Source: Tubulanus polymorphus (taxonomy: Eukaryota > Animalia > Nemertea). Taken from it: a stretch of DNA of 64,000 nucleotides. The position numbers and the translations under genes were made by a program. The notes beneath the pieces are model-generated. The model was not told the origin of the DNA. It was given only the letters and a program-made list of their open reading frames with translations, and made no database searches. Of this stretch, positions 2,887 through 56,589 are shown piece by piece; position 1 is the first letter of the stretch, and each line of letters begins with the position of its first letter. The DNA lies in contig NC_134034.1 of the NCBI RefSeq assembly GCF_964204645.1, forward strand, positions 12,412,962-12,476,961. The letters run 5' to 3'.

Positions 2887-12609
<9,723 letters not shown>

Positions 12610-15172
12610 CGTTCTACGTCACCTTTTTATCAACTTTTAACCTCCGGTTGTTTTTAGGCGTTTTAACCAGTTAACGTTCTAAAAATTCTTTTTCCTATTT
12701 ATCTGAAATAGAAAGAAGTCAACGTGTGACGTGGCAAAACTACGCAATGAATCGCGAGAGACGAGTAGAATGTTTAAGTCCCACAATCTCAGGATCGAAA
12801 AAGTTTTTTAAAAATCGAAACTATTAGAATTGATTAAAATTCCTAATTTTCGGTTTTATACTAAAAACCATTTTCAAGAGTATTGAAAATTATTGCATTG
12901 ATTAGAAGACATTTATGTCTTATGATGGTGATGGCGGCAGGTCGCGGGTTTCGGCCTGGTCCCTTGTCGTGTGAATGGTTTGGTAATGCTGGTTGGGGTA
13001 GGTTCTGAATGTTCAGGCCAAGCAGATGCTACACTGTAAGGCTGGGCCTGTGTACTAAGTTCCCTATGGACTATGTACACTTTCTTTTTCGCTCGGTCGA
13101 TGCCAGTCAATGAGTCACACTCAGTCATATGCTCGCTGGTTTGTTTGGGGTGCCTTGTGTTGTATGTATTTTGTTGTGGCCTCCTTTCTTAGGCTGCAGT
13201 GAAGGATATATATTTTTACCATCAGTGTTCTATCTGAAACTTGTAGAACGGCGCTGATTTAGTTGTCAATCAATCAGTATTTAATTACGGCTCTATTTCA
13301 AAACTGACTGCGACGCGGTTTCACTCAGAACGGCGCATGAGTGTCGAGGTGTCTAACGTAAGAAACGAATATTTGAAAACTCGCTTGCCAGTGCAAGTTA
13401 AATAGTAAACTCACTTGCCAGTGTTAGCTTTAGGGGGTTAAACGCATGAAACGAAAATACAACATTGCGATTCTACTGATTTTCCTACCCGAGTAATCGA
13501 CAGCGTTCAAATTTAATCCTAGCAAAAAAAAGTCATAGATTTAATGGATTAAATCAGACTTGCGACATTTCTGTGAGTTCGAAGGCACTTTCGCAACTTC
13601 AGTAGAATTTTTGGACAATAGTCCAGGCAATTGAAGTCCAATTCAGAGGCACAAAACACTTTTTTATAATCTAATAGCCGCATAAGAACCAAGTCGAGAG
13701 GAGACAAGTCACTTTAACCACAAATTCTTGGGCAAAATAGGATCATGGATGGTGGACACAATGAAGTGAAAAAGTCAATCTTCCCATTCTTTACTAAAAA
13801 CGAAGACAGGGTCCGATCTAAGGAATAAAAGCCACTTGCCCTCGGGCAAGCATATCTGAAATATTACTTGCCCTACACTCAGTCCAACTGCTGTGTCGAT
13901 TGGGAAAAAGCTTCGAGATACATAAATGCACCAGCCCTGAGGTAAAGTGATAAAAACCTACTTGCTCTAATGATAATATGCTAGTGGACCCTGGAATAGG
14001 GACTGAAGTCCTAAGTGATATCGTTTGCCTTTCTCTAAAACCAGAAAACAACTAAATCATCAAACTTCTTTTTTGGTATGAATATCAGATGTATTTTCCA
14101 TAAAAAAAGTTGTACACATATTACTAATAAAACACGGGGGGCAACGTGACGATATCATCACCGTTTATCAGTTACCAGTAGCGGCTGTACAAAATATCGT
14201 ATCAGGTTCAAATCAATCGCGAAATTATCGAAAATAAATTCCTACCATCACGTTGCTATCATAAATGCACAAATTACTAAATAACCGTTTATACACTATC
14301 GGTAGATTTTCTTCTATTATTTCATCGTCCAAATTGAATTCGTAAATATTTCGATAATAAAACGCACGTCTTTCTTTTGCAGCCCTCGTACAAAGCCTCC
14401 AGCGAACTTCAACTATTTTTTTTTGTTAAGAACAAGCACAACATAAATTTTTTATTTCACATTTCCTTTTTTACACTCAACAATTGATACGCCAGCATTA
14501 TTGATAACGCACAGGACTATCGTCGCGAGGACAGACAGAACACGGCCTGCCCGGTTTATTTCACCGGGACAATTCTGTTTCTCGCTTACAAATGAAATTA
14601 GGTTTTAATCTAGAGGACTTTTTTCAATCTAGTCTCCGACGATGGACAGACAAGCTTCGATACTTTTCGCGCCAGCAAAAATATTAATAACCGCGGGCTC
14701 AGTTTACATTTAAAAGTTTTCTGAATTAGAGACTGAATAATAAATCTGATCCCGCAAAAGAAAACCGACTCCGCTCCGGACGAGAGTAAATTACTCGGTC
14801 CAACCGGCTGCGTTTTATAGCAATTGCGTCTTATAAACAATACCCAAATATGTATCAGTATTTATATATATATATATACAGATCCGTTATTTTACACGTC
14901 CGCGTCTCGAATCCGCGCGACCGACGTTGTGGGAGAAAACCTCGGAAAATCGCTGCGCGCGAAATCCTACCCCGGCTTAAACCGATCGAATCCCGCCGCG
15001 AGCACATGCGTGTGTGTGAGTACACCGGTGTTATACGTGCCGATATCGATATGTTTGTTTTTTTTTCTCCGATTAGATTTAATTCTCGTCGCGTCGATTC
15101 GTTTTTTCCCAAAGTTTCTATGTTTTCGTGTAGTGTTTTGTTTAAACGTCTGTTGGATGTCGTCGGTCGTCC

Positions 15173-18099: not shown

Positions 18100-19578
18100 T
18101 CATTCAGTAACATCGGTTTTAGATTTTTTATTTTTCGAGCGTTTCGCCAGTTTAAATTTCTTCTTTCGTTTCTCCGCCTTCCTCTTCATCTCCGCGTCGG
18201 GATCGAGTCCGTCGAGGATCATCTTTTTGCGTTTGTTAATTTCGCGTTTTTCGCCGAAGTCCTGTTCGTCGAGGTAGATCTCGGCCTCGCGTCGCGACAC
18301 CGCGACCTCGGTGACGATCTTCGCGATCGCCGCCTCGTCGACCGGATACTCTAACAGTTTCGTATTAACATGCGCTTCGATCGCGTGGACTAGTTTAACG
18401 TCGAATTGCGTAACAAGCGAGACGGCCATCCCGTTCCGACCCGCTCGAGCCGTACGCCCGACCCTGTGAATATAATCCTTCGGTTTATTCGGAATGTTAT
18501 GATTAATAATCAAATCGACTGACGGAATATCTAAACCGCGCGACGCGACGTCCGTCGCGATCAGGATCTTCACTTGTTGCGATTTAAACCGTGCTAACGA
18601 CGCGAGGCGTTGACTTTGAGGGATCATCGAGTGCAGAACGACGACGTCGAATCCGAGATCGCGGCAGATCATTCCGAGAATCTGACAGTATTTACACGTA
18701 TTCGTAAAGATGATCAACGCGCTCGCCGCGTTCTGTTCGATATACTCGTGTATCACGTGTATCATATACGCGTCCTTCACCTCGGCGGGCATCAGAACGT
18801 ATCGTTGATCGAGCTGTTCAACGGTCGCCGTCGACGCCTTCGAGAACCACGTGAACGGTTTATTCATCGCGATTTCCGCGAGTTCCCGCAACGTTTCGCT
18901 CATCGTCGCGCTGAATAGCAACGTCTGCCGTTTCGCTGGCAACGCGCCGAAAATCGTTTTCAACTGTTCGCCGAAGTCGTCCTCGAGCAGACGATCGGCT
19001 TCGTCCATGATCAGAAATTTGATCTTCCTCAAACTGAAATTCGTCCCGGTCGAGATGTGGTCGGCAAGTCGACCGGGCGTCGCTATGACGACGTGTGGAC
19101 GCTGGACCAGATCGAGACCTTGTCGGATCATGTCGCGACCGCCGGTGATCACGACGTCTTTCAATCCGATCGGACGACCGAGAACGCGGAATTGTTCGGC
19201 GACTTGAAACGCCAGCTCGCGAGTCGGAGTGATCACGAGCGCGAAGATACCGTACGGGTCCTCGCAGAGTTTCTGTAAAACGGGCAGCGCGAACGCAGCC
19301 GTTTTACCGCTACCGGTCTTAGCGCAGCCGATGCAGTCGTCGCCGTTGACGATCGGAGGGATACAGTTGCGCTGAATCGGCGTTGGGCGTTTCATCCCGA
19401 CCGCGAGGCATTGTTTAACGAGCCAGTCGTTGAGTCCTAGCGACGAAAATAAACCGGCTTCGAAACTTGAACAATCCTGTTCAGCATCGGTAGTACTGGG
19501 TACAGCGACTACGGCGCCATCTGTCGTTTCTGGCTGAACGCCGTCTTCACTTTTTTTATTTTCTCTTTTTTTAGGCAT
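18100..19578 (-). CDS. DDX49: DEAD-box RNA helicase DDX49/Dbp8, single coding exon
   Basis: 492-aa uninterrupted ORF with [51 protein letters not shown] and the DDX49-like tail DFGEKREINKRK. Confidence 0.95.
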   Translation of the reverse strand: MPKKRENKKSEDGVQPETTDGAVVAVPSTTDAEQDCSSFEAGLFSSLGLNDWLVKQCLAVGMKRPTPIQRNCIPPIVNGDDCIGCAKTGSGKTAAFALPVLQKLCEDPYGIFALVITPTRELAFQVAEQFRVLGRPIGLKDVVITGGRDMIRQGLDLVQRPHVVIATPGRLADHISTGTNFSLRKIKFLIMDEADRLLEDDFGEQLKTIFGALPAKRQTLLFSATMSETLRELAEIAMNKPFTWFSKASTATVEQLDQRYVLMPAEVKDAYMIHVIHEYIEQNAASALIIFTNTCKYCQILGMICRDLGFDVVVLHSMIPQSQRLASLARFKSQQVKILIATDVASRGLDIPSVDLIINHNIPNKPKDYIHRVGRTARAGRNGMAVSLVTQFDVKLVHAIEAHVNTKLLEYPVDEAAIAKIVTEVAVSRREAEIYLDEQDFGEKREINKRKKMILDGLDPDAEMKRKAEKRKKKFKLAKRSKNKKSKTDVTE

Positions 19579-20537: not shown

Positions 20538-29823
<9,286 letters not shown>

Positions 29824-30385: not shown

Positions 30386-31487
30386 TGTTCAATGACTTGT
30401 CTGACTTATCACAACTAGTATCCTCATGGACAGACTGACCCTGTACGCATGATTTGATACCGCCATACTCTTTGACCAAAATCAAAAATGGGATGAGTAA
30501 ATTGGAACAAGAAACGAAATTCTAATGGACTTTCCTAAATTTACAAGATGATGTACCGTTTAAAACAAATTATTTTTTTTTTCCAGATTATGAGTGGTTA
30601 GCATGAAGTTTTTGGCAGAATTTCAGAGGATCGGTGCTCCAAGTAATTAAAAAAGCTTATAGGTCTCCCCTCAATTTAATCAAGGAGTTTTTTTAATGCA
30701 AATCTGTCTATTGACAGGTGTGATTAACGAATGGTGATTAATCACGAATACATGGTATTAGTGGGTTTTCCCTCAATGACTCAAATAGACCGCTTTCCTC
30801 GTGCATTGTGTGAGTTAGTTATCTCGGGGTGCATGAACTGTCCTTACGTAGTTGTGACGAATAAACTAATTTCATTAGTAAATGCGGTTTCTATTATATG
30901 GAGACCTGTGTTGGTGTGAATCTTTAACTGAAGTGCTATCGGTCGGTATAATTTATAAATCATTCTAGAATTTAAGAAAAAAAAAACAGGCGGCGGCTTA
31001 TAAATTCGGAAGTAGCTGTTGGGAAACAAGTACGTAATTTATATTATTTCATGGCCTTATTAAAGTTCCTCCACTATATTGTTCAGCTGACTACTGGCGC
31101 GTATTCAACCCGGCGGTGGAACCTTTCATAATGTAAGCCCATTCAACAATAGAGACACAATAGCGATTTTTCAGAGTTGTTGATATCATTCTGACACGCG
31201 CTATTGAATACGTCACCGGCTGACCACGGTGTACACAAGCATAGACCATTCACCTCTGCACACTCACACTGTGAACATGCTACCGTGGATTCTCCTCCTG
31301 GCGATTTTCGCTGCGCTCCCGCTCCTGTTCCTGCTTCCTGAGGAACGACGTCTTTATGTTTTATGTGTTACTGTTCGTCTCTGTACTGTCCTGTACTGTT
31401 CCGTGTTCATTAATCCGTTCTTTTTTCCAGGTTCTAACCCGTTTTATTTTTCAGGGCCGATTTCTCTGTCGAATTTCAATGTTTGCT

Positions 31488-32263
31488 GGAACAAAACTAA
31501 TGTCCGAAAGCGTCGGCTCTCCTTCGCCGGTCATGTGTCGAGGAGGTCAGACAAAGAGTCGGTCAGGAAATTCTGCCCTCTACACGCCCTCATACGGAAC
31601 ACGAAAACTAGGATGACGAGGCCTCACTGCCCCCACCTATCTACAAAGTGTGCTGAGTGATGTCAATGACGGGCATATCTGTGGGATTGCGCGGGATACA
31701 AATGGAGCGGTTATACTGGATTGTCACGCTACTAGCATTCATTGTGTCCTTGCGACCGCCCGGATGAGGGATGATTCTACTGTCACGCTCTTTGTTTCTG
31801 GTATTCTGAGTCGGCTGAGGGATGATTCTACTGTCACGCTCTTTGATTTCTAGTTTGAGTGCTAGTTTTCATTGTGTCCTTGTGACAACCTCGGTCAGTG
31901 GATGAAGTCTCTCGTCGGCTTGTGAGTGCTAGTTTCATTGTGTCCTTGTGATAACCTCGGTCAGTGGATGAAGTCTCTTGTCACGCTTTTGGGTGCTAGT
32001 TGAGATCTTGAATCTCAACCCGGTCAAGCTGGTTGTACTGCACTATTTGTGTTTCGTGCAATTTTACAGGTGTGTCAGTTACTGACGTCGCCCAGTACAT
32101 CCTGCAGTTAGATGGGGAATGTGAGGCGTCGTCATCCTGGGTTTCGCGTTCTGTGTGAGGGCGTGTAGAGGGCAGTATATTCCTGGCTGGCTCTTTGTCT
32201 GGTGTTCTGGGCATGTGACCGGCGACGGAGAGCTGTAAAGCTTTCGAACATTAGTTTTGTTCC
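31488..32263 (+). ncRNA. Long imperfect RNA fold-back (~235-bp arms, ~300-nt loop) derived from an RTE-type LINE fragment
   Basis: 31488-31723 is the reverse complement of 32025-32263 (ggaacaaaactaatgt...acattagttttgttcc). About 32 differences give G:U pairs on the + strand versus about 9 A:C. Confidence 0.8.
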
Positions 32264-35200
32264 GTACCAGGTTTTCATCGCTCTTCTCTTTTTTTTAATT
32301 TCAGGACTCCCAAGATGAAGAAGAAGATGCTGAAGGTGACTACAACGAAGAGGATGCCGAAAAAAAGAACACTGAATTCAGCAATATTGAAAGTTAAGTT
32401 GATACACATGTAAATTACGATGCGTGATACGAAAAGGATTGTGTAACTACAGAATATTGTTCTTTTACTCATTTCAGGTTAATCCGTAAAGGCCCATCTA
32501 AAATCTGCCCACCAGAAGTGCCCACAAAAGACTCCACCTTGAAGGACCACCAAAGACCTGCCGCAACCGAACCTGGCAGTCTTGACCTCATCCTGCATGG
32601 CAACAGGAATGCATACATACATAAAGCTAAGTTGATTCTTCATATCTGGGTTAGAATGCATAGGCACTGGAGAGGATAGAGACGCTGGTCAAGCTCACCA
32701 TCTCCGCACTACTTTATTGAAGCTCTGTGGCCGGTAGTAAATTGAAATATAGCTAGGCAATGATTGCTTGAATATTTACAATATTAGACGAAATGATTGA
32801 GTGAGGTCCCTTTAATATTCTTTGGTCTCGTAATTAAAATGTAGATTGGTCAGTTATTGATTGAAAGATTTTGTAAGTATGTAAAATTAAGGTAAATTCA
32901 CATTTAAGGTAAATTCAAATTGTGACATTTGAAATTTTTCAAATGTACCGTAGATATTTCAGGCCTCATATGACTATTGTTTAACTGACAATCAAGATAA
33001 AGATAGGACAATTTACTAATTAACCAATCGCTTAGATATAAGCAATCATTCAATATCTTATAATGTTTGATGAAAAATGCTTCTGGTGTAGATAAAACTA
33101 TGGACTGCAGGTCTTTAAGAAACTGTGATTAGGTCTCAGCACTTTGACAAATCTAGAATTAAACAAAGCTTTCAAATCATTCCCGAAAGCCATACTCTGT
33201 GCCTTGTTTTGCACAATGATTATTGTTTAACTGACAATTATCATATATAGCTAGGAAAAATTGCTCATTAACCAATGGCTTAGATCCACAATAAAGATGA
33301 ATTCATTATTTCTAAGATCAAAAACTATTTATACAGTATGTAATACAGGTCCATAATATAAATGTCGTAAAAACTGAAAATTTAAATTTGGCTGATATAT
33401 GTATGCGCACATCTGAATCAGTCTCATCGACTGATCAGTAATTCTATCTCCAACTGACGTACTTATGGCAACTGGTCATGTTCTTCACAATTGCCAAAAT
33501 TTACCTAAACCTAACTGATTCATCTAAAAGCCATACTGTGTGTCAAGTTACGCATAATAGATATTGTTTAACTGACAAATAGAATCAAAGGTGAATTACT
33601 CATTAATGTATTACTATATGATATCTACGATTAAGGTAAATTCAATATGTTATGTGAAATTGTTATCAATTCAGGTCCATGGACATTTAAAATGTAGCTG
33701 ATTCATGTGTATCTGAATACATTTATTTATCTGTATCTAGTGAACCTATTGTGTCTTCGTACAGCTGTATTAGTTTTGATACAAATTGCCAAAATCATTT
33801 CACACAGATTTACTTCTGATCGAAGGGAGATAAAACAAATCTGTATGTGCACAAATACATTCCTGAATTTGGAAGGGGGAATATTTCAATTTCACTGTGT
33901 ATGTCAGATTGAGAGCCTTATTCTGACAGGATATCCTAAACTTAGGTCTTATTCCTCTTGCTAATAGCTCTCTTTTACTAACCCCTCTCCTTCAAACTAT
34001 TTTCTAGCATCATGTCTTGCACCGCACCAGGGAGGTCCAGTCATAACAAGGTCTTTCGGTCCTTATACACAGTGTACTACTATAAAAGGGAAATAAAGAT
34101 TATATGGCAATTCGGCTTTAAGGGAATTTCTAATTTACCACTTAAATGCGCTTTTATCTTAATTTCTGATGAATTCATAATAGTGATGAATTCACCACAT
34201 GTGAAATTCTACTCATGTAGATTTTCAGGCTCCATGTTCAATTGACTATTAAAATGTAGCTAGTATGATTACTAATTAATGGATCGCTTAGATATCTAGA
34301 AGATTAATTAAAATTAATTCAATGTAATGAAAATAAGTGAAAATTATTTAAAAAATAGTGCAGTGGATGAGATGACTGTATCGTGCAATGTCACCTGCGT
34401 CATAACTGGGCGACATGTGTGTGGGATCTGTTGAATCAGTTAGGTTTTGGGGAATTCTGTATTCGTCAAACTAGATATCAAAAGCTCTTATGCAAAATAA
34501 GCATTTTGAAATAGTGAAAATAGTCTGAAATTCTCGTCATGTAGAAATATAAGCCCCGTATAAAATATTGTCTGAGACAATTTTAATTATAGCTAGGAAA
34601 TTAATTGAGTGATTAGGTATCTAAGATGAAGATTAATTCAGCATCTTCATATAAGGTAAAAGTGCTCAAATCAAGGGTTGATAAGAAAACTATATAATCT
34701 AATTGGTTGATATCTAAAGAAAACAGGGTGTGTTTAAACTCTGTCTCTTAGGCGTGGGATTTATTGAATCTTTATAGGCTTTGCAGAATTCTGGATTTGT
34801 CAAGGCGTTGGAATGATTCAAAGTTTATTAAATCTGTAGAACCATGTTGACCAGGATCAATGCTGGCAGCGCACAGTTAGTTATATTATCATAATTACAA
34901 GATCATTGTATATATTAGGAGCAATATTCAGAATTGCTGAAATGGATTAGAATAACCTTCACTGGGTACAGATGTCACCACCTATGGGTAGAAAACAAAT
35001 CTCCTAAAGTTTATTAATTGACGATGAAGTTAATTTGATAATACGAACAAGGTTTAACTGACAATTGAAATGTATTTAGGGCATTATTACTAGCAGGTTT
35101 GCACTGTACGATGGGCCTGGGTTTCAATAAAAGCCTACTGGTCACTGAGTGTTTAGCACCCAAGAAAGAAAAACATCAAGAATCTCTGAAGATAGAAACA

Positions 35201-36276
35201 GTACAAAAACAATTTGATAAGATTGATTATGCATTACTAAATTTGTTGTAACTCTGGTATTCCTAGAGATGACTAAAGATGCTTTAGTCGAATTGTTTTT
35301 AAACTATAATAATCAACCGTTGCTTAGATATCTAGAATATAGATTAATTACGATATGAGTTGAATTTCATATAGATATTGTTTAATAATTGACTATTATC
35401 AAAATCTACTTACCGGTCCACATTGCTGATCTTATATATATGAATTGACACGTTAATTATGATTAGATATTCAAAAGGATTTTCTGCTCACAAGATTCTG
35501 CTCTTTTTTTCAGCAATACTACTAATCAACTAGTCATAAAATGTACCAAATGATCTTCAACCTTGTAATATAGATATTCCAAATCTCGATGTATTAAAAT
35601 AGGCAGTCAACTTAATTGACCCCAATCAGTCGCTTGCCGGCTCAGACTGGTTGGAAGATTAATTGAATGAACTGGAACCGAATTTCCCAATTATTATTTA
35701 AATTTCCCAATTATTTCCCAATTTCCAAAATCGCGATGTGTTAAATTAGGCGGAAAGAAGTTAACCTTATAGTATAGATATCCAAAGTCACTGATGTATT
35801 AGAATAAGCAGAAAAAAGTTAACCTTGTAATATAGATATCAAAAATCACAGATGTATTGAAATAGGCAGAAAAATTAACCTTGTAATATAGATATCCAAA
35901 ATCACAGATGCAGGCTCTGTCTGACAAACATCTTGACTTAATATGCTCTCTTCCCAATGTCATTTCACTAGCCAGAACTCTGGCGGTGAGAAGTCTGGTG
36001 ATAGCACCATCCAGAATCCGACTCCGGGACTGAGTCCGATGACACCCTCGGACGTTCCAACAACATCATTACCTAGTCAACACGCGGGACAAACAACTTG
36101 GAGGATGAAGACGTCAACATATACCCGAGACAAACTACAATAAACTTTCGGACTATTATATATACGGAAAAAACGACCCAAAAAATTATGTAAACTTGAC
36201 CCCCGATCACACGACTATATCTGTACTTCGATTTCGAAAAAAGACCAAAGAAATGTATAGACAAAATTCTTCAACC

Positions 36277-36997
36277 TTGTAAACTTTCGGACTACATGAA
36301 AAAAAATACCAAAGAAATGTATAACTTAGACAAAATTATCTTATTGTAAACTTTCGGACTACTAGAAAAAAAAATACCAAAGAAATGTATAACTTAGACA
36401 AAATTATCTTATTGTAAACTTTCGGACTACATAAAAAAAAAATACCAAAGAAATGTATAACTTAGACAAAATTATCTTATTGTAAACTTTCGGACTACAT
36501 AAAAAAAAAATACCAAAGAAATGTATAACTTAGACAAAATTATCTTATTGTAAACTTTCGGACTACATGAAAAAAAATACCAAAGAAATGTATAACTTAG
36601 ACAAAATTATCTTATTGTAAACTTTCGGACTACATAAAAAAAAAATACCAAAGGAATGTATAACTTAGACGAAATTATCTTATTGTAAACTTTCGGACTA
36701 CATGAAAAAAAATACCAAAGAAATGTATAACTTAGACGAAATTATCTTATTGTAAACTTTCGGACTACATGAAAAAAAATACCAAAGAAATGTATAACTT
36801 AAACAAAATTATCTTAATGTAAACTTTCGGACTACATGAAAAAAAATACCAAAGAAATGTATAACTTAGACGAAATTATCTTATTGTAAACTTTCGGACT
36901 ACGTGAAAAAAAATACCAAAGAAATGTATAACTTAGACGAAATTATCTTATTGTAAACTTTCGGACTACATGAAAAAAAAATACCAAAGAAATGTAT
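36277..36997. repeat. ~67-bp tandem repeat, 11 copies
   Basis: ttgtaaactttcggactacatgaaaaaaaataccaaagaaatgtataacttagacaaaattatctta repeated head to tail with no spacers. Confidence 0.95.
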
Positions 36998-39900
36998 TAT
37001 AAAAATGTATAACTAAAGGTCAACCAACTGAGATGATCGTCTCCAATAACGAACCCAGCAATCATGAAAGGTAACTTGATATATGTGGAATTATTTCGAT
37101 TTATTCTTTATGTAATGTTTTGTGATAACAGGACATCATCTTTTTATGATTGCAGCTAAGTTTCAACTATCAGAAAAAGCCCAGCTTGAGATCAACTACT
37201 CGGCCAAAATCTACAAACTGGAACGGTGCACAGAAAAGGGCATGACTGAACCCAGCAATCTTTATTGCCGGTATATATAGATTTCAGGCCTCATATGAAT
37301 ATCATTTAATAAGTGACTATCATCAAAATCTACCGGTCCACATGGCTGATCTTACTAGTCTTAAACAGTGATGAACTAGTCCTACTACTGTAATTGATTA
37401 TTGGGGTTTAAATTGGGCAATTGACGTCAATGAATTTTACTTTGTGAAAAACATTGTTGCTCGTTATTTGAAATGACATGTAAATTATGATAGATATATC
37501 TGTCTGAAATGTTTTGCTTTCTTCACTTTGTTTCAGCCAAACTACATCTCGGAAATAATGGTCTGAAGAAGACACCCACAACGATTACTGATTGACCCAT
37601 TTCCTGATGAAAACTGCAGAAGCCCAGGTGATAAGTTGAGGAGCCAGTGACGGATTAATCACTCGACGTTTGATTTCTATAAAACATTTTATCAAGAGCA
37701 GCAAAGACAATAGTGAATCTTATAAACACTGATTCGAGCAGCAAAACTAATGGATTATTTCATAAACACTGATTCAGGATAAACAATGTTTTAAAAGCAG
37801 CAAAGACAATAGTGCATCTTATTAGGAGCAGCATAGATAATAGTGCATGTTATAAACACTGAGATCCAGGAGCGGCGAAGACAATAGCAGAATTCTGTAG
37901 TAAAGTATTGATTTTTTACTTATCACCTTTTTGAAACCAGTCTGATCGATAATATAGTGTTTTCGAGGAAACTATTTTATAATGTTTTATCCAATGTGAG
38001 AGTCTATTAATAAAAGCTAAGCTCCATTAATTCAAGATATTGGTCTTCGATCCGTGGTTGATAGATAAGTCAAGTTAGGTTAGTCACTAGGGGTAAATGT
38101 CGGAGTCGAGCGCCTAGTTTGGACTCGTAGGTCTGTTCGAGTTAACGCCTAAACTGAGATATAGTTTCAACTTGATATTGATAACTTACCATAGTTAAAC
38201 ATAGTCAACTGGCTATTTGTCGGTATAGATATCACGTAGTTAGGAAACATAGGACATAGCGTTAGACCAGTGTTGATGTACAAATATTAAGTATTTGCTG
38301 AATTGTAGATGTACTAATTTGATGGCATTGATATTTTCGGACGGCCCATGTAACCAATTTGACAAATGAATCGTAGATGTCGATTTTCACATCGACCTGT
38401 AAGCCTCCATCAAACTGTTTGATGATCATAGCTACGTATTTGAAAACAAAAGCTTTATCTGAAAGGAGACCATTATTTACATTTGAGAGGTTAAGCTAGG
38501 ATTAACAAGACATAAAGTTATAGCTAGGACTAATTTTGAACGTTTTAACATCGTTTATAGCTGTTTGAACTTCTTTTATTGTAATGGGTAAATCCATATC
38601 ACGAGATGGCTCTCGTGAATAATCACTTAACTTCAAATTGGGTGTATAATGATTATTAAGGAGTGGCAGTGAATCGGTAGCGCTTTTTTAAATGGGCCCA
38701 GAACTTTACAGTGAAAAAATGCCTGCAGTTGTAAATAGAGGAGTTTAAATGATACATAGTACAAAATACAAGTACATAAATTAATAACAAAATAAATCAA
38801 AAAACCAATAAATAATCGATAGTTAATAATACAAAATAGAAGCACATAAATAAATAGATAATATTAAAAAATAGATTAAAAGTAATAAACAGCAATACAA
38901 ACAAACAACAAATTAATGTTCTATTTACATGAAAAGGCATTTTTTTAAATATTCATCAACAAGGTTCTTCATTTATCGAACAACCTTCCCTAAGTATAGC
39001 GAAAACCCGAGATCTTTTCTGTTGTTATTCAAAGCATTCTATCGGACTCAGTTATTGTAATGAACAAAACAAATAACCATAAACCTTAACTAAATCGAAC
39101 ACACTTAAAGAAAATAACTGATATGATAGAATGCTTTGAATAACTGTGAAGAAAGATCGACCCGTCCTTTCAACTAGCCGCGCTCAATCACTGCTGTGAC
39201 TGTTGATCGTTATACTGGGATAGACTTACTATTTAAAATCTGGTACATACATTTTACTTTTTAGAAAGAATGTAAAACAGCTCTAAACTTAAGTAATTGA
39301 TGTTATTGATTAGTTACCGATTGTATGATTATGTTGATGTTTTCGAAGCTGACAGAAAAGAACATCAGAATACTTAGTATTTAATGCCAAGGTGCTTGGA
39401 CATCTTTAAGACAGGCAAAGTGGGCAAAATTCTAGTTTTCTAGTGAAAGTAATGATTAGTTGATACTGAGATTTCCAAAGTGAATCTGTATGTTCCATCT
39501 CTAGTTTTAATGCTTTTATGTTGGAGACTGTTATTGTAACACAGTTTGCATGTTTGGAAATTAGGAGCTTGCATGGTGATTCCTCGATTAGATTATTATT
39601 ATTGTGTGAATAAAACGATGTACATTTTCATCATTCGCGCTGAAACTTTTAAGTTGTTCAGTTTTATAGCAACAATTCCACTGTGGTGCTTTTTAGTGGT
39701 TCATAAAATACTGATTTAGTTAAGGGCTTGTCGAAAATAGCAGGAGCATAGAATATAAGGAGCAGTTGCTTGATAGGCTAACTTGAGGATGCAGTGCTAA
39801 TTGGTCAATTGTCCTAGCTTTGTTTTGATTATCGGTTTAACCACGTCTGCGTGGGGCCTGTTATATCTGGACTCGAAGAATTTATGATTTTTATATTGAG

Positions 39901-42420: not shown

Positions 42421-42836
42421 TTATCAAATGTTCCACTGCCGGGTTGAATACGCGCCTCTGTACCCAGCTCTCAACGATATCGAATTCCAGAGTCCCACGT
42501 CTTTGCGGTCCGAGATCCGACGCGAGTGGATTGACTGCATGATCGAATAATAAAACCCCGGCAATAGACAGATTTTAATTCATAAAAATTCTTATTCAAT
42601 TGAGTGGAGACATATTAGGCTTTTTAGATTACTTGCAGCAGCGTGGATCCTCTGGAAATTCTGCCAACAACTTCAATACGCTTACACTCATAATTTGAAA
42701 AAACCCAAATTTCTTTAATTTTGATGCTGGATTAAACGGTACATCATCATGTAAATCCAGGAGTCCATATTAAGAATTTCGTTTCTTGTTTTCGGTCTTA
42801 AAATGATAGTATCTGTTTTTTTCCAAAGTATTTTAA
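42421..42836 (-). repeat. Truncated 5' flank of a third unit copy
   Basis: 42562-42836 is a near-identical direct repeat of 55909-56187 and an inverted, more diverged copy of 30506-30713. 42421-42456 is the reverse complement of 31096-31131. Confidence 0.8.
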
Positions 42837-47039: not shown

Positions 47040-50000
47040 TGATTTCAATTCAAGTTAGAATAATCCGTTGGCAGTTTGAATCAGTAGATTCTAGATGACG
47101 AGTTGATCTCAGGCCGAGCTTCTTCTTATAGATGTGATTTAGCTGAAATTAATAAAAGAAGATATCCTGTAATTATACAATATCTTACAATATACACAAT
47201 TTTTCATACAGCATTAATCATAATAAATTCCATGTAAATCAACTTACCTTTCAAGATAACTGGATTTAGTGTCGGCTAGGAGTTCTAAGTTAGTTGATTA
47301 GTAAAATTCAAGGTGCATTCTTCTGTTGTCTGTTCTAATGAGTAGATTCGAGATGGTTAGTTGATCTTAGTATGGGCTTTTCTTATAGATGTGATTTAGC
47401 TGAAATGCACAAAAGGAGATATCCTGTATTCACACAATATTTCATATAGCATTAATGAAAATGGATTCCACGTGAATCAACTTACCTTTCAAGTCGGTTT
47501 ATGAGTTAAATTCGTTCTGTGGTAGTTGATGATTTCAATTGGAATATTCTGTTGGCTATTCGAATCAGTAGATTTTTGACTAGTTAAATCTTAGGCATTT
47601 TCTTATAGATGTAATTTAGCTGAAATGAATAAAAGAAGATATCCTGTAATGAGACAATATCTTACAATATACACAATTCTTCATATAGCTTTAATCATAA
47701 TAAATTCCATGTAAATCAATTTACCTTTCAAGATAACTGGGTTTTGTGTCGGCTAGGATTTCTAAGTTAGTAAAATTCAAGGTGCATTCTTCTGTTGTCT
47801 GTTCTAATGAGTAGAAACGAGATGGTTAGTTGATCTTAGTATGGGCTTTTCTTATAGATGTGATTTAGCTGAAATGCACAAAAGGAGATATCCTGCATTC
47901 ACGCAATATTTCATATAGCATTAATGATAATAGATTCCATGTGAATCAACTTACCTTTCAAGATTGCTGCGTTAAGTATCGGCTAGGATCGTCTAAGTCG
48001 GTTCATGAGTTAAATTCGTTCTGTGGTAGTTGATGAATTCAATTCAAGTTGGAATATTCTGTTGGCTATTTGAATCAGTACATTTTTGACTAGATAATCT
48101 TAGGCTGAGCATTTTCTTATAGATGTGATTTAGCTGAAATGAATAAAAGAAGATATCCTGTTATTAGACAATATCTTACAATATACACAATTCTTCATAT
48201 AGCTTTAATCATAATAAATTCCATGTAAATCAATTTACCTTTCAAGATAACTGGGTTTAGTGTTGGCTAGGATTTCGAGGTTGGTTGAGTTTGAAGTTGG
48301 TTCTAAGTTCAAGTTGCATTCTTCTGTCGACTGTTTTAATCAGTAGATTCTAGATGGTTAGTTGATCTTAGTATGGGCTTTTTCTTATAGATGTGATTTG
48401 TGATAACTGGGTTTAGTGTCGGCTAGGATTGTCTAAGTCTGTTCTCTAATCGGCAGATTTTAAACGAGTTGTTGACCTCAAGCGCCGCAGTTTCATATAG
48501 ATATTACTCAGCTGAAACGAGTTAACAAAGATATCCTGTAATTACAAATATTTCATTCAGAATTAATCGTAATAATTTCATGTATATCAACTTACCTTTA
48601 ACGATTGCTAGGTTCGGTATTGGCTTGTATACTCGGTGTGTTGGGACATTAGTTTCGAACCCCAACTGCCTAATTATTTGTTGTAGTAGTAGCATTAGTT
48701 CATCACTGTTTATGATTAATGACGGGCCGGATATATATCAGATCAGCAATGTGGACCGGTGCATAGATTTTGGTAATTAAATGCCTCTTCTGTGCGCTGT
48801 TCTCTAATCGGCAGATTTCAAACGAGTTGTTGATCTCAAGCGAGGCTGGTTCACATAGGATAAAGCTGAAATGGTTAACAAAGATATCCTGTAAATACAA
48901 ATATTTCATTCAGAATTAATCGTAATAATTTTATGTATATCAACTTACCTTTAACGATTGCTAGGTTCGGTATTGGCTTGGATACTCGGTGTGTTAGGAC
49001 ATTAGTTTCGAACCCCAACTGCCTAATTATTTGTTGTAGTAGTAGCATTAGTTCATCACTGACTAATGACGGCCGGATATATATCAGATCAGCAATGTGG
49101 ACCGGTGCATAGATTTTGGTAATTAAATGCCTCTTCTGTACGCTGTTCTCTAATCGGCAGATTTCAAACGAGTTGTTGATCTCAAGCGCGACTGGTTCAT
49201 ATAGATAGGATAAAGCTGAAAGAGTTAACAAAGATATCCTGTTAATACAAATATTTCATTCAGAATTAATCGTAACTAGTGGAAAGCCCATGGACACCAC
49301 AGGGGATTTCTAAACAGGAACTTATTTCCAACTTATTATTTCGTTGCATGTTAATTGAGTATTTGGGCATTTTAAATTGGCCTTATTTATGTGGTGTGAT
49401 CAGCTGTGCCCATATAGAGACCATACAGGATCTCAGGACTCACTTGACCTTCTTCCCATGGAGGCCCAAGGTTACAGAACTATAGATAGAAACAAATATG
49501 TAAAGTACCGATATGATCATTTCATAATGTATGAATTTCATGACCCGGCAGCTGGGTCACAAAGGCAACAGTAGCTCGTACTGTATCAACAGTGACAACA
49601 GTGGCTGTCTCTAGTCAGTGGCTATACAAGCTGACCCATGCACCCTCTGTGAACAGTAGGAGAGACTACAAAAATTTGGAAAGTGAATAATTTTGAATGG
49701 AAACCATGCCCAAGCGATAAAAGACGTCGAGATCTCCCGCCGGGCAAATTTTCAGGGCAATTCATCCAGTAACGATGGAGCAGTCGGTACAACAATTCAG
49801 TATCATTATATAAGATAATTTCATGTATATCAACTTACCTTTTATTATTGCTTTGTTCGCTATCGGCGAGGATCTCCTAAGTTGGTTGGTTGATGTTGAG
49901 ATCAATTCAAATTGGCCCCTTCTGTGTGCTGTTCTCTAATCGGCAGATTTTAAACGAGTTGTTGATCTCATGAGCGGCAGTTTCATATAGATAGGATTTA

Positions 50001-50920
50001 GCTGAAAATGAGTAAACAAAGATATCCTGTAAATACAGATATTTCATTCAGAATTCAGGCCCCTTCTGTGCGCTGTTCTCTAATCGTTAGATTTTAGATG
50101 AGTTGTTGACCTCAAGCACTCGTTTGACTTTGTAGCCGGGTCACATCGTACTGTATCAACTGTGACAACAGTGGCTATCTCTAGTCAGTGGCTATGCCAG
50201 CAGACCCATGCGCCCTCTGTTTACAGTAGGAGAGACTACAAAAATTTGGCAAATGGCGCTGTTCCAGTTGGTCGATTTTGGAAGAGTAGTTGATCTCAAG
50301 CTGGGTTTTTTCTTATAGTTGCAATTTAGCTGCTATGATTAAAAAAAGATATCCTGTAATGACAAATTATTTCATTTAGAATTCATCATTATCATTTCCA
50401 TAAAATATCAACTTACATATCAAGTTTGCTGGGTTCCGTATCAGTTAAAATGTTCTAAGTTCATTGATGCATTTGATTTAAGCTGGAATTGTTGTGTGTG
50501 CCGTTCTTATCGGTAGATTTATGATGAGTTGTTCTCAAGCTGGGCAGTTTGATGAAGATAGGATTCAGCTGAAGAGTTAACAAAGATATCATGTAATCAC
50601 AAAACATTTCATTGAGAATGAATCGAAATAACTCCATCTATATTAAGTTACCTTTTATGATTGCTGGATTCGTTATCGGCGTGGATCATCGAAGTTGGTT
50701 GGTTGATTCTAGTTGGCTGTGCGCTGTTCCAGTTGGTCGATTTTGGACGAGTAGTTGATCTCAAACTGGGTTTTTCTCATAGTTGAAATTTAGCTGCAAT
50801 GATTAAAAGAAGATATCCTGTAATGACAAAGTATTTCATTTAGAATTTATCGCAATAATTTCAACTATTTTAAGTTACCTTTTATGATTGCCGGGTTCAT
50901 TATCGGCGAGGGTCTCCTAA
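47040..50920 (-). repeat. Tandem array of ~12 exon-intron modules (83-105 nt GT-AG introns, non-coding exons)
   Basis: Repeated (AAG)|GTAAGTTGA...TACAGGATATC...TTTCAG|CT units, e.g. introns 50878-50794, 50651-50569, 50416-50330, 48948-48866, 48595-48512, 48238-48134, 47954-47869, 47724-47620, 47485-47400, 47247-47143. Confidence 0.85.
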
Positions 50921-53276: not shown

Positions 53277-53900
53277 TCTCAGGGTTCCAACTGGCAGCGG
53301 CAGAGTCGGAGTTCTGTAACGTGGCCTCGTCCCAGCTAGTGGCGGGGTACTGACGACACGGGTGTTACTACGGAGGACCCGTAATCAGAGTAAGACGGGA
53401 AGCGACAAACAACTTCGGCTTCGGGGGATATCCGATCTTCAAGCATCAACACCAAAAGATAACCGGCACCCAGAAGAGAGAGAGAAAAACTGGGTGAACG
53501 GGGAGCCCATCAGCAAGATGCCAATGGGTAGCCTTAGGCGAAGAAACCAGCCGATTCAGACTAGAATGGACCAAACTGGGGACCCAATTGAGAATTGAGC
53601 ACACCACCTAAGACAACCGACACCCAGATGACAAGAGAAAAACTGGGTGAACGGGGAGCCCATCAGCAAGATGCCAATGGGTAGCCTTAGGCAATGAACC
53701 AGCAGATTCAGACTAGAATGGACCAAACTGGGGACCTAAAGATCCAACAGCCCCCTCAGTCGAAGATTGCTACCGCCCCCATCTTATTCTGATCGTAGGT
53801 CCTCCATAGTAACATCCGCATCACCAGCACTCCGCCACTAGCTGGTAAGAGGCCACATAAGTGAACTCAGACTCTGCCGCTGCCAGTTGAAACCCTGAGA
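53277..53900 (-). ncRNA. Long imperfect RNA fold-back (~165-bp arms, ~290-nt loop)
   Basis: 53277-53443 is the reverse complement of 53735-53900 (tctcagggtt[c/t]caactggcagcggcagagtc...). About 15 G:U versus about 6 A:C on the - strand. The loop holds a ~100-bp direct repeat (53483-53585, 53633-53735). Confidence 0.75.
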
Positions 53901-56589
53901 TTGAGAGGGCGGGGGCGAGGGACGAATGAAATGAAAGAAAAAAAAATGAAAAAACAAAAATAATATAGAAAAAAAATGAAAAAAATAAAGATATAAAATA
54001 TACCACACATTCATACGACACATATTATAAACTCCATTCACTCCTCTTGCACACACCGCGCACACAACTCCATCCACCGCACACATAACTCCATCCACCG
54101 CACACATAACTCCATCCACCGCCACCGGCGCCACGCCACCACTCCGAAAAATACCGCGCCACAAGATCGCCAGGAAACACAGCAAAAGCTGAAGAGCTCG
54201 AGAGAACGCCATCTGATCGTGTCAAAGACTAGTACTCGATTGAAAGATTTTGGAGAAATTCCGAAGTTTACATTATCAAATGCAAACATAAATGTAGATA
54301 TTTTATTGAACGGAATTGATTTTTCAGTTCACGTCAGTTGAAAACCCGTTTTGATCGATGTTTTAATGTTTATTTTAAATACAAATTAGATTTAAGACCT
54401 AGGATTATTGACTAATATCTAATTGTGAGGGTAGGATAAAATGATCGCGGATAAATTTCCTGCTCGCATGCCACAGCTCTGTCAAATCTCAATCGTCCAG
54501 TGCTGCCCCTAAATACTGTGGCGAATACATAAACTAATCGATTAATATGCTCTACCCGTATTTGTACATGAGGCCTACCGTTTACTTATCTTACTTAGTT
54601 TACGTCGTTCGTGTCTTGTGGTATCCCAAGACTATAAATCATATTGGATCCATTTTCAGGGGTAGAGCTAGATAATTAAATGATAATTATCCGAACAGTA
54701 GATTGTTCTATTTTTTCTCCACGTCAAAGTTAATAGTTTAAAAATTCAAAATACAAATTATGTTCAAATTCAGATTTCACAAACAACAACTCGTTGGCCC
54801 ACTGAAAGATAGCAGCGAAACAATCTTCGGGTAATAAATGTTAGAAAGAATGAGGTTATCCTCTCAGGGCCTGGTTAATTGCGTTACCGTACCGTAATGA
54901 AAAAAAGTAAGCAAAGAAGGTAGGCCTGGACCGTGTAGGCTTACATTATCCAACTACAAAAGCCTTGACGCAACACCAACAAAATCGAAATGGAAAATAT
55001 CAAAAGTGCAGGATATCACATGCCTGAAGTAGCTTGGGCTTGAAGCTAATTACACCACGAGGGCAGATCTAGACAAATATATCCGAATTTCAATTGCTAG
55101 ACTTTAGAGTGTGGTCGAATGAGAGAGTATAGCATCTCAGGGAATGTCTAGAAGTTCAAATCACACTGCGTAGATTTGTTCACCTCAAGATTCATATAAA
55201 ACTCAAACAGTGCCATAAAAATGAGCACCTGAAGTCTACATCAAGGACGGGGGTGGCCATTTTATCAGAATCTTGGGAAGAAATCCGTCGAGGAAGCGTC
55301 GATGGATAAAAGCAAACACATCTGATTTAAAAAAAAAAACATGTTTTGATCATTAGTTTCCATAATATTGAAAGTATGCCTGTTTCAATAATTCTCATTA
55401 AAAAACCAAAACCGACCCTGAAAGATATATTCCAATGAGGTTGGTTTGCAATTTAGGTGGTAAACTATTGGAGATTTGGCTGTAGAAATATGAATCACAT
55501 TATGTTTCATGCAGTAGCCTATGTCGTAATACATTGACGCGATTGTGTGCTTATAGATTTCACATGGTCACGGTCGAATGATCGTGGGTGGTTCTCAGAG
55601 AATTTACTATACGCCAGTTCAATTGAGTCAATTCACGCTCGTAACACAAACTAAATCCCGTATACTCTAACGTGCGGTCAGCCCTATGGGCCCTGGTTGT
55701 TAATTATTAAGATTTTTGATGACGCGGTCTTTCGTCTTAGACTGTTGTTTGGTCATTGTTCGGAAGGTTGACCAAATTTCATCTGGGTTTGCATGCAGAC
55801 TTTTCGAATTTGTCTATACCCAAGCTTTCTTAGCGTTTTGAATGCTTAATTGGTGGTTTCTTCAGCCGACTTTAAGGCAAGGAGATTGTCGATGGAGTTT
55901 CTTTGTATCAATAGAGACAGATTTTAATTCATAAAAATTCTTATTCAATTGAGTGGAGACATATTAGGCATTTTAGATTACTTGCAGCATGGATCCTCTG
56001 GAAATTCTGCCAACAACTTCATTGCGCTTACCACTCATAATTTGAAAAACCCAAATTTCTTTCTTTAATTTTGATACTGGATTAAACGGTGTCATCATGT
56101 AAATCTAGGAACTAGTCCATATTAAGAATTTCGTTTCTTGCTTTCAGTCTTAAAATGATAGTATCTTTTTTTTCCAAAATATTTTAATGGCGTTCATATA
56201 AATGTTTGTTTATGGATAAGATTGGTAAGGGAAAAAATTTATTTGAGCCTTTCTTTTCGAAGACAGGATAGGTACTCAAGCAAGCAAGGAAAGCTAGCAA
56301 ACAAGAAACATCATCATCATCAATATCACGGACTTATGGAGGCCTGTTGAGGCCTATTGGTGTCCGGCTCGTTTGGTAATTAACATCAATTTAGGTGACG
56401 GTCGGTTTAAAATATTTCTCATGCAGCCATAGTTTGATATGCACCTAGCCCATCTAAAAGATGGGCGTTAAATGTTCTTTAGATCAGTTAGAATGGTTGC
56501 CAAGTATTGTAACATTACATGACTAGTTAAAAATATTGATATTGAATGGGACAGGCAACCAGTCTATAAGTGAAGGTAGAGACCGGTAA

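Follow-up and report, generated by a model that had tools for sequence, protein, structure and literature searches.

A strand-biased, G:U-rich fold-back in a gene-like repeat family of the nemertean Tubulanus polymorphus, possibly kept as an RNA hairpin by selection

The locus and its surroundings

The window, i.e. the whole 64-kb stretch of Tubulanus polymorphus DNA analysed here (genome reported at 313-358 Mb; PMC8468679), contains a long fold-back at positions 31488-32263 that lies within a gene-like repeat unit on the plus strand, and a second fold-back with unrelated arms on the minus strand:

30392-37400, plus strand: window copy of the host repeat unit, with its left end at 30392, recognised by homology to other copies
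31130-32330, plus strand: conserved core, i.e. the hairpin with ~350 nt upstream and ~65 nt downstream, delimited by the diversity among copies
31488-31725, plus strand: left arm of the hairpin, frameshifted and with one stop; putatively similar to the C-terminus of a non-LTR retrotransposon ORF2 (motif resemblance)
31726-32024, plus strand: loop of the hairpin, 299 nt, U/G-rich on the plus strand
32025-32263, plus strand: right arm of the hairpin, inverted relative to the left arm, from which it differs by 32 changes of G:U-type and 9 of A:C-type
32307-32393, plus strand: exon-like piece, 87 nt, acidic, with CAG acceptor and GTTAAGT donor
53277-53900, minus strand: second fold-back with unrelated arms of 163 nt (77%) and a loop of 299 nt, ~24 copies

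The surroundings of the first hairpin are gene-like on both sides. Upstream, an ATG with a hydrophobic, signal-peptide-like stretch is located at 31267, and the length differences of this stretch among copies are multiples of three; downstream, a polypyrimidine tract with a CAG (32306) starts 43 nt after the right arm, directly ahead of the exon-like piece. The CAG acceptor and the GTTAAGT donor of the latter are kept in all copies; the exon body between them is hypervariable and carries indels that are not multiples of three. Similar exon-like units form an array at 47040-50920 on the other strand. In one subfamily, the AG at 32477 is directly followed by unrelated sequence. The signal-peptide-like stretch and the left arm are covered by a reading frame of 143-152 aa (31229-31660, plus strand), which is open in most copies, even at 54-80% identity; no such protein was found in the databases searched, and the persistence of the frame may simply be due to its pyrimidine-rich composition. 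Judged from these features, the host unit appears to be a multi-copy derivative of a secreted-protein gene that probably no longer codes for protein.

Several other elements were noted in the window. A MITE-like palindrome at 28715-29224 (~500 bp, arms 85-87% complementary) has ~3,000 candidate copies in the genome, on both strands, and an inverted repeat of 300 bp at 40898-41193/43105-43401 has arms that are 87-90% complementary and separated by a 1.9-kb spacer. A repeat of ~230 bp occurs in three window copies of 74-76% identity (30506-30714, 42562-42790, 55908-56140), two of which are located upstream of the two hairpins. On the minus strand, an intronless reading frame at 18100-19578 encodes a DEAD-box helicase of 492 aa, the orthologue of DDX49, with the best named match in Lineus longissimus (72%) and close matches in other spiralians.

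Structure and strand bias of the fold-back

The fold-back, which an initial annotation of the same DNA had placed at arms 31488-31723 and 32025-32263, was recovered both by a repeat finder, as three colinear inverted-repeat blocks (31488-31511/32240-32263, 31516-31569/32180-32233, 31570-31711/32037-32178), and by aligning 31488-31730 globally to the reverse-complemented segment 32020-32263 (182 identities, 6 gap columns, 17 transversions). Over the arms 31488-31725/32025-32263, the 238 paired positions comprise 180 Watson-Crick pairs, 32 transitions of G:U-type, 9 transitions of A:C-type, and 17 transversions; the hand counts of the initial annotation (~32 versus ~9) were thereby matched exactly, and the asymmetry between the two transition types on the plus strand is significant in the two-sided binomial test (32 versus 9, p=0.00043). 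The G:U-type transitions are distributed over both arms, 19 with the G in the left arm (G/A) and 13 with the G in the right arm (T/C), and account for 13% of the stem pairs. At the level of DNA, the palindrome is ~76% identical; the corresponding plus-strand RNA stem is ~89% paired if G:U is included (238 positions). Compared with the dsRNA stem of >100 bp on one strand that is used as a criterion for hpRNA/endo-siRNA loci, the plus strand offers 238 positions of which 89% are paired.

Folding of both strands is in line with the higher stability of the plus strand that the initial annotation had predicted: The region 31488-32263 reaches -442.3 kcal/mol (z -25) on the plus strand versus -317.9 kcal/mol (z -18) on the minus strand, and the arms alone, with a tetraloop in place of the loop, reach -344 versus -256 kcal/mol. 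The loop, which contains tandem units of ~66 nt (31856-32001), likewise folds more stably on the plus strand (-98.5 versus -57 kcal/mol). The G+T skew is limited to the hairpin and its loop, the rest of the repeat unit being without skew. A search of the whole 64-kb window against Rfam at the gathering threshold gave no match to an RNA family.

The simplest explanation of such counts would be the neutral decay of a DNA palindrome, with an asymmetry that arose by chance. Only 41 transitions were counted, which leaves some room for chance; however, the p value of 0.0004 for the first hairpin decreases to 2e-5 if the co-oriented second family is pooled with it (49:15), the bias is present in all aligned copies, and the two other inverted repeats of the window, taken as controls, do not share it. 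The MITE-like palindrome 28715-29224 gave 9 versus 5 and the inverted repeat 40898-41193/43105-43401 gave 9 versus 8 differences of G:U- and A:C-type, and in both controls transversions are at least as frequent as transitions. Since neither control is biased, the G:U bias is not a general property of the palindromes of this genome, and we regard chance as a scarcely credible explanation. Both the fold-back and its excess of G:U on one strand are genuine.

Copy number, extent and class of the repeat family

For the left arm, no fewer than 316 candidate matches were found in its own genome, the best 40 of them at 98-100% identity. A 20-mer common to both arms gave 148 forward and 153 reverse genomic matches with up to 3 mismatches; among the matches listed, these form facing pairs ~583 bp apart, which indicates ~150 hairpin copies on all large contigs, spread over all chromosomes. 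Sequencing depth in DNA-like runs is ~34 on single-copy sequence versus 4,000-13,000 on the hairpin.

Thirty copies were retrieved, 29 of which entered the alignment. In 29/29 aligned copies, homology extends into the flanks for at least 180 nt on either side of the hairpin. In the window copy of the unit, which measures at least 6 kb, the hairpin begins ~1.1 kb from the left end. This end differs from copy to copy: Left of 30392, the window contains unique sequence except for a MITE, and some other copies extend further left than this position. To the right, colinear homology continues to ~35700 and then through satellites with periods of 58 nt (35735-35906) and 68 nt (36209-37048), and right-hand breaks are present among the copies as well. 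The two satellites are components of the 3' part of the unit and recur beside other copies. No long ORF, LTR or terminal inverted repeat was seen in the host unit of the window, and no target-site duplication was found at 31488 or 32263.

The assignment of the fold-back to a MITE or another fold-back DNA transposon is contradicted by the homologous flanks in 29/29 copies and by the lack of a target-site duplication at the arms. The hairpin is not mobile by itself, as each of the 29 aligned copies has the same flanking sequence around it. What had been taken for a single locus is thus one of ~150 near-identical copies, which form the conserved core of a gene-like, interspersed repeat. For annotation, this means that the many hpRNA candidates noted in this genome are copies of a few repeat families and are to be counted once.

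Sequence variation among the copies

In each of the 29 aligned copies, 30-37 G:U-type differences were counted versus 8-13 of A:C-type; given this uniformity, the bias is older than the spread of the family. The changes that are private to a single copy have a different composition: Watson-Crick pairs were converted to G:U in 12 cases and to A:C in 12 cases, and the ratio of transitions to transversions is ~1. This symmetry argues that no present-day, genome-wide mutational bias creates G:U pairs, and that the window copy is not visibly under selection itself. Individual copies now decay neutrally.

The distribution of diversity along the unit is distinctly uneven. Nucleotide diversity is mostly 0.003-0.07 over the conserved core 31130-32330 (except for 31400-31439, where it peaks at 0.09-0.15) and reaches 0.15-0.3 further out; over the hairpin itself, it amounts to 0.01-0.03 in arms and loop alike. 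In the closest copy pairs, flanks and core have diverged equally (1-3%), whereas the means over all pairs are 17% for the flanks versus 2.7% for the 1-kb core, i.e. about sixfold lower in the core. From the comparison of closest and all pairs, it follows that several source lineages with strongly diverged flanks possess a nearly identical hairpin. Among subfamilies, the hairpin has about six times fewer changes than the flanks, and these are almost only transitions.

Variants shared by at least three copies affect 3.4% of the hairpin sites versus 32-44% of the flank sites (ten times rarer in the hairpin), and their ratio of transitions to transversions is 22:4 in the hairpin versus 241:174 in the flanks (Fisher p=0.007). 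Of the 16 common stem polymorphisms able to alter pairing, 9 are interchanges between Watson-Crick and G:U pairs (~28% expected, p=0.016), the stem polymorphisms including both A:U/G:U and G:C/G:U kinds. A consensus structure calculated with RNAalifold from the 29 copies has -416 kcal/mol and 305 pairs. Compensatory double changes were not seen in any of these 305 pairs, the 29 copies being 97-99% alike and thus too similar for that test.

Taken together, the pattern of variation points to a constraint on RNA-type structure. Of the initial annotation, the fold-back, the plus-strand excess of G:U and the more stable plus-strand fold are borne out; the single hpRNA gene that it had envisaged is replaced by a repeat with ~150 copies.

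A second hairpin family at the same position of the unit

The second fold-back (53277-53900) exhibits a bias of the same kind: 17 G:U-type versus 6 A:C-type differences were counted on the minus strand, which is the sense strand of its own unit (p=0.035). In the window and at several other loci, it is followed by the downstream module that also follows the first hairpin, in the same relative orientation, with a signal-peptide-like ATG before it and a splice acceptor ~53 nt after it. Its loop (53440-53738) is U-rich on the sense strand, contains tandem repeats, and has the same length of 299 nt as the loop 31726-32024; homology between the two loops was not detectable (BLAST E>0.1; global alignment z ~2). 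The recurrence of position, loop length and sense-strand bias in a second, unrelated hairpin suggests a rule rather than an accident.

The position shared by both hairpins would also be expected if they served as an aid to splicing and had no small-RNA role: An inverted-repeat insertion of 776 nt into a formerly short first intron might be tolerated only while it is folded, since the fold would bring the 5' splice site near to the branch point and the 3' splice site. The base of the first stem lies 43 nt before the polypyrimidine tract with its CAG (32306) and that of the second hairpin ~53 nt before a similar acceptor, the exon bodies are less conserved than the splice signals, and two unrelated hairpins with 299-nt loops occupy the same position, all of which is consistent with such a role. 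However, no clear 5' splice site was seen within 31340-31487, the splicing is putative, contigs of a run that may be RNA (run X5, see below) are unspliced at the next exon-intron border, and the conservation of the loop sequence would be left unexplained; we therefore judge a pure splicing function to be decidedly unlikely.

A more far-reaching interpretation of the two families is a modular system of hairpin cassettes in a spiralian genome: spliced, secreted-protein-like units that no longer code for protein, each with a sense-strand RNA hairpin that comes next to the signal-peptide exon and ends ~45-55 nt ahead of a splice acceptor, with at least two unrelated kinds of stem on loops of 299 nt, the whole serving as a copy-amplified, heritable library of dsRNA or siRNA. 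By drift through G:U pairs, the stems would have ceased to be palindromes as DNA and remained so as RNA. We put this forward as a speculation that is on the whole unlikely; if true, the system would be the equivalent in nature of the G:U hairpin transgenes made by engineers.

Origin of the arms and possible targets

The arm translations described in the initial annotation were found again, with frameshifts and a shared TGA; they read RKRRLSFAGHV / ALYTPS(Y/H)(G/R)TR..G*R..T, which we take to resemble the C-terminus of ORF2 of non-LTR elements, RTE-like ones among them. Resolving the G:U sites as C to T yields a conceptual translation with AGHVPR.PDKEPARK, TPSHGTR.PG and IARDTNGAV; in our estimation, this version is closer to the tail of a non-LTR ORF2 than the version obtained with A to G.

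Based on this resemblance, the fold-back had been explained as a hairpin-RNA gene that originated from an RTE ORF fragment and provides siRNAs against an active RTE family. A language-model protein search added a lead in the same direction, an 'Endonuclease-reverse transcriptase' cluster with a score of 0.80, which is weak and below the level of evidence. The homology searches with the arms do not support the claimed RTE origin: Pfam at E<=10 gave no reverse transcriptase and only a chance match to YncO, word-seeded protein searches gave no match, and phmmer against 1.84 billion representatives gave no reverse transcriptase and listed one LIM-repeat protein. The latter is regarded as a chance match, its score being the sum of six weak repeat matches. 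DUF6451, a further candidate from the language-model search, was rejected as it matches genome sites adjacent to RT sequences and no hairpin copy. Thirty RVT_1 loci of the genome were compared with the arms by means of blastn, tblastx and a motif regular expression, and none resembled them. Since the in-frame stretches of the arms do not exceed 45 aa, the sensitivity of the protein searches is low, and their blank results are to be read as absence of support for an RTE origin and not as its refutation.

The genome's own sequences give the same picture with regard to parent and target. The best 150 genomic protein-level matches to the arm ORF are all members of the hairpin family, with open frames of ~150 aa, so that no long ORF parent is among them, and no target outside the family is found among these 150 or among the first 100 of the 301 20-mer matches, which are all located in hairpin copies. 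Moreover, the arms have diverged from each other by 24%, so that few 21-mers would match any parent. As a whole, the proposal of an siRNA source directed against an active RTE family is very doubtful.

Selection or strand-specific mutation

Five sequencing runs of unspecified kind gave contigs of the family, from which copy number and variants could be read; a sixth run, putatively RNA, had no match. Since the transcriptome of T. polymorphus was sequenced in a paper of 2014 (PMC4986456), run X5 of 2014, one of the five, may be RNA. Its contigs cover 31140-32875 and not the upstream flank that is covered by the DNA runs, and they continue unspliced over the next exon-intron border. This coverage may reflect transcription of the hairpin; we regard it as a lead that falls short of evidence for expression. 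At 32061, 32085, 32106 and 32110, all X5 contigs read G, whereas A is found in 28-29 of the 29 genomic copies; the four positions belong to A:U pairs of the stem and are located in the right arm. Among the changes in X5, A>G is the most frequent. Genes for ADAR-type deaminases are present in the genome. The A>G sites could be due to RNA editing or to the divergence of a sister species.

As a tentative reading, to which we assign a probability of roughly 0.45, the fold-back is the conserved core of a gene-like repeat in whose source lineages selection kept an RNA hairpin, its function being a matter of interpretation. The core would be positioned between a signal-peptide-like first exon and the conserved splice acceptor of a unit read on the plus strand, and selection in the lineages that seeded the copies would have kept the transcript foldable into a long double-stranded stem. 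Transitions that form G:U (sense-strand changes from C to T or from A to G) would have been tolerated, A:C mismatches and transversions would have been removed, and in the course of long purifying selection about three quarters of the pair-breaking changes would have been lost. Both types of G:U-forming mutation seem to contribute, C to T according to the protein-guided polarisation and both according to the A:U/G:U and G:C/G:U polymorphisms. With less weight, the folded RNA might be used as long dsRNA, i.e. as a hairpin-RNA precursor of siRNAs or as an ADAR substrate, and its targets might be the family itself or relatives, diverged by now, of the sequence that gave rise to the arms.

Two observations do not fit easily to selection on pairing. 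The first is found in the difference counts: A:C-type differences and transversions stand at the neutral proportion (9 versus 16), and G:U-type differences are in ~fourfold excess; a strand-specific mutational process would give the same counts, which speaks against the selection reading. The second is the loop, which is as conserved as the stem. This is not explained by selection on pairing alone and may be due to a recent exchange of the core between subfamilies; conservation of the loop at equal strength fits neither the selective nor the mutational explanation well.

The mutational explanation takes the bias as a by-product of strand-specific mutation or editing during the copying of the unit and the hairpin as functionless: Either C-to-U deamination of a single-stranded DNA intermediate or A-to-I editing by ADAR followed by reverse transcription would have converted G:C or A:U pairs to G:T, with an effect confined to the source lineages and, in these, to the transferred or sense strand. 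Besides the ~fourfold excess of G:U-type over otherwise neutral proportions, it would accommodate the symmetric decay of resident copies, the variable left ends (as in 5'-truncated retrocopies), the ADAR-type deaminase genes of the genome, and, in X5, the G at the four A:U pairs of the right arm together with the predominance of A>G. However, intron-like segments with conserved splice signals are retained in the copies, which argues against a spread via spliced RNA, and the 5' neighbours of the 32 G:U Gs (T 12, G 12, C 7, A 1) are unlike the preference of ADAR; the contexts of the G:U sites contain no signature of ADAR, APOBEC or CpG. The occurrence of C to T at several sites (by protein-guided polarisation) beside A-to-G polymorphisms argues against a single mutation type, the unpaired parts of the same unit are without skew, and the sixfold lower divergence of the core would remain unexplained. 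We consider a mutational origin rather unlikely, though of sufficient weight to be kept beside the preferred reading of an RNA hairpin retained by selection.

The family constitutes an unusually clean test: ~150 copies decay neutrally, while in the source lineages the hairpin stays almost unchanged and the sequences next to it diverge sixfold faster. A mutational bias would be informative too, since it would document that strand-specific editing took place when a repeat was copied.

Comparison with known systems

The hpRNA loci of Drosophila consist of a long inverted repeat that is transcribed from a single strand and whose arms, which stem from some other sequence, pair over hundreds of base pairs; they evolve rapidly and change in copy number. 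To our knowledge, no strong G:U bias has so far been reported for hpRNA loci, and we know of no work on an endogenous RNAi or hpRNA pathway in nemerteans. Endo-siRNA loci of the Drosophila hpRNA type are treated in PMC10317233 and PMC10292708. The fold-back of T. polymorphus is similar to them in being a long, one-strand inverted repeat with a stem of hundreds of base pairs, with arms that probably come from elsewhere, and with rapid evolution and a changing copy number, as far as sequence alone can tell; in contrast to the one or few loci of Drosophila hpRNAs, it is present in ~150 dispersed, near-identical copies within a long gene-like repeat.

With MITEs and fold-back elements, the hairpin has in common the multiple copies, the long arms and a loop with tandem repeats; it differs from them by constant flanks in 29/29 copies and by the lack of a target-site duplication, and the true MITE-like palindrome of the same window has no G:U bias, unlike the hairpin 31488-32263. 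Another point of comparison are the genomic fossils of ADAR- or APOBEC-edited retroelements, i.e. one-strand clusters of transitions that became fixed in repeat copies with an RNA or single-stranded stage. One-strand transition clusters in repeat copies are present here as well; however, the mutation types appear to be mixed, the context is not ADAR-like, and retrotransposition of the unit is putative.

The closest parallel in design is an engineered one. In plant G:U hairpin-RNA transgenes, every C of one arm was changed to T, by which RNAi was kept and the self-silencing of the inverted-repeat DNA was avoided (Zhang et al. 2022, PMC9263138). As in these constructs (PMC9263138), the DNA inverted repeat of T. 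polymorphus is degraded by transitions and its RNA still folds via G:U; unlike them, it is natural, and its G:U pairs (13%) are spread over both arms (19 G in the left, 13 G in the right). If the hairpin has indeed been selected at the level of RNA, it would represent a natural case of the plant engineers' design, in which transitions break the DNA repeat and G:U pairs keep the RNA duplex.
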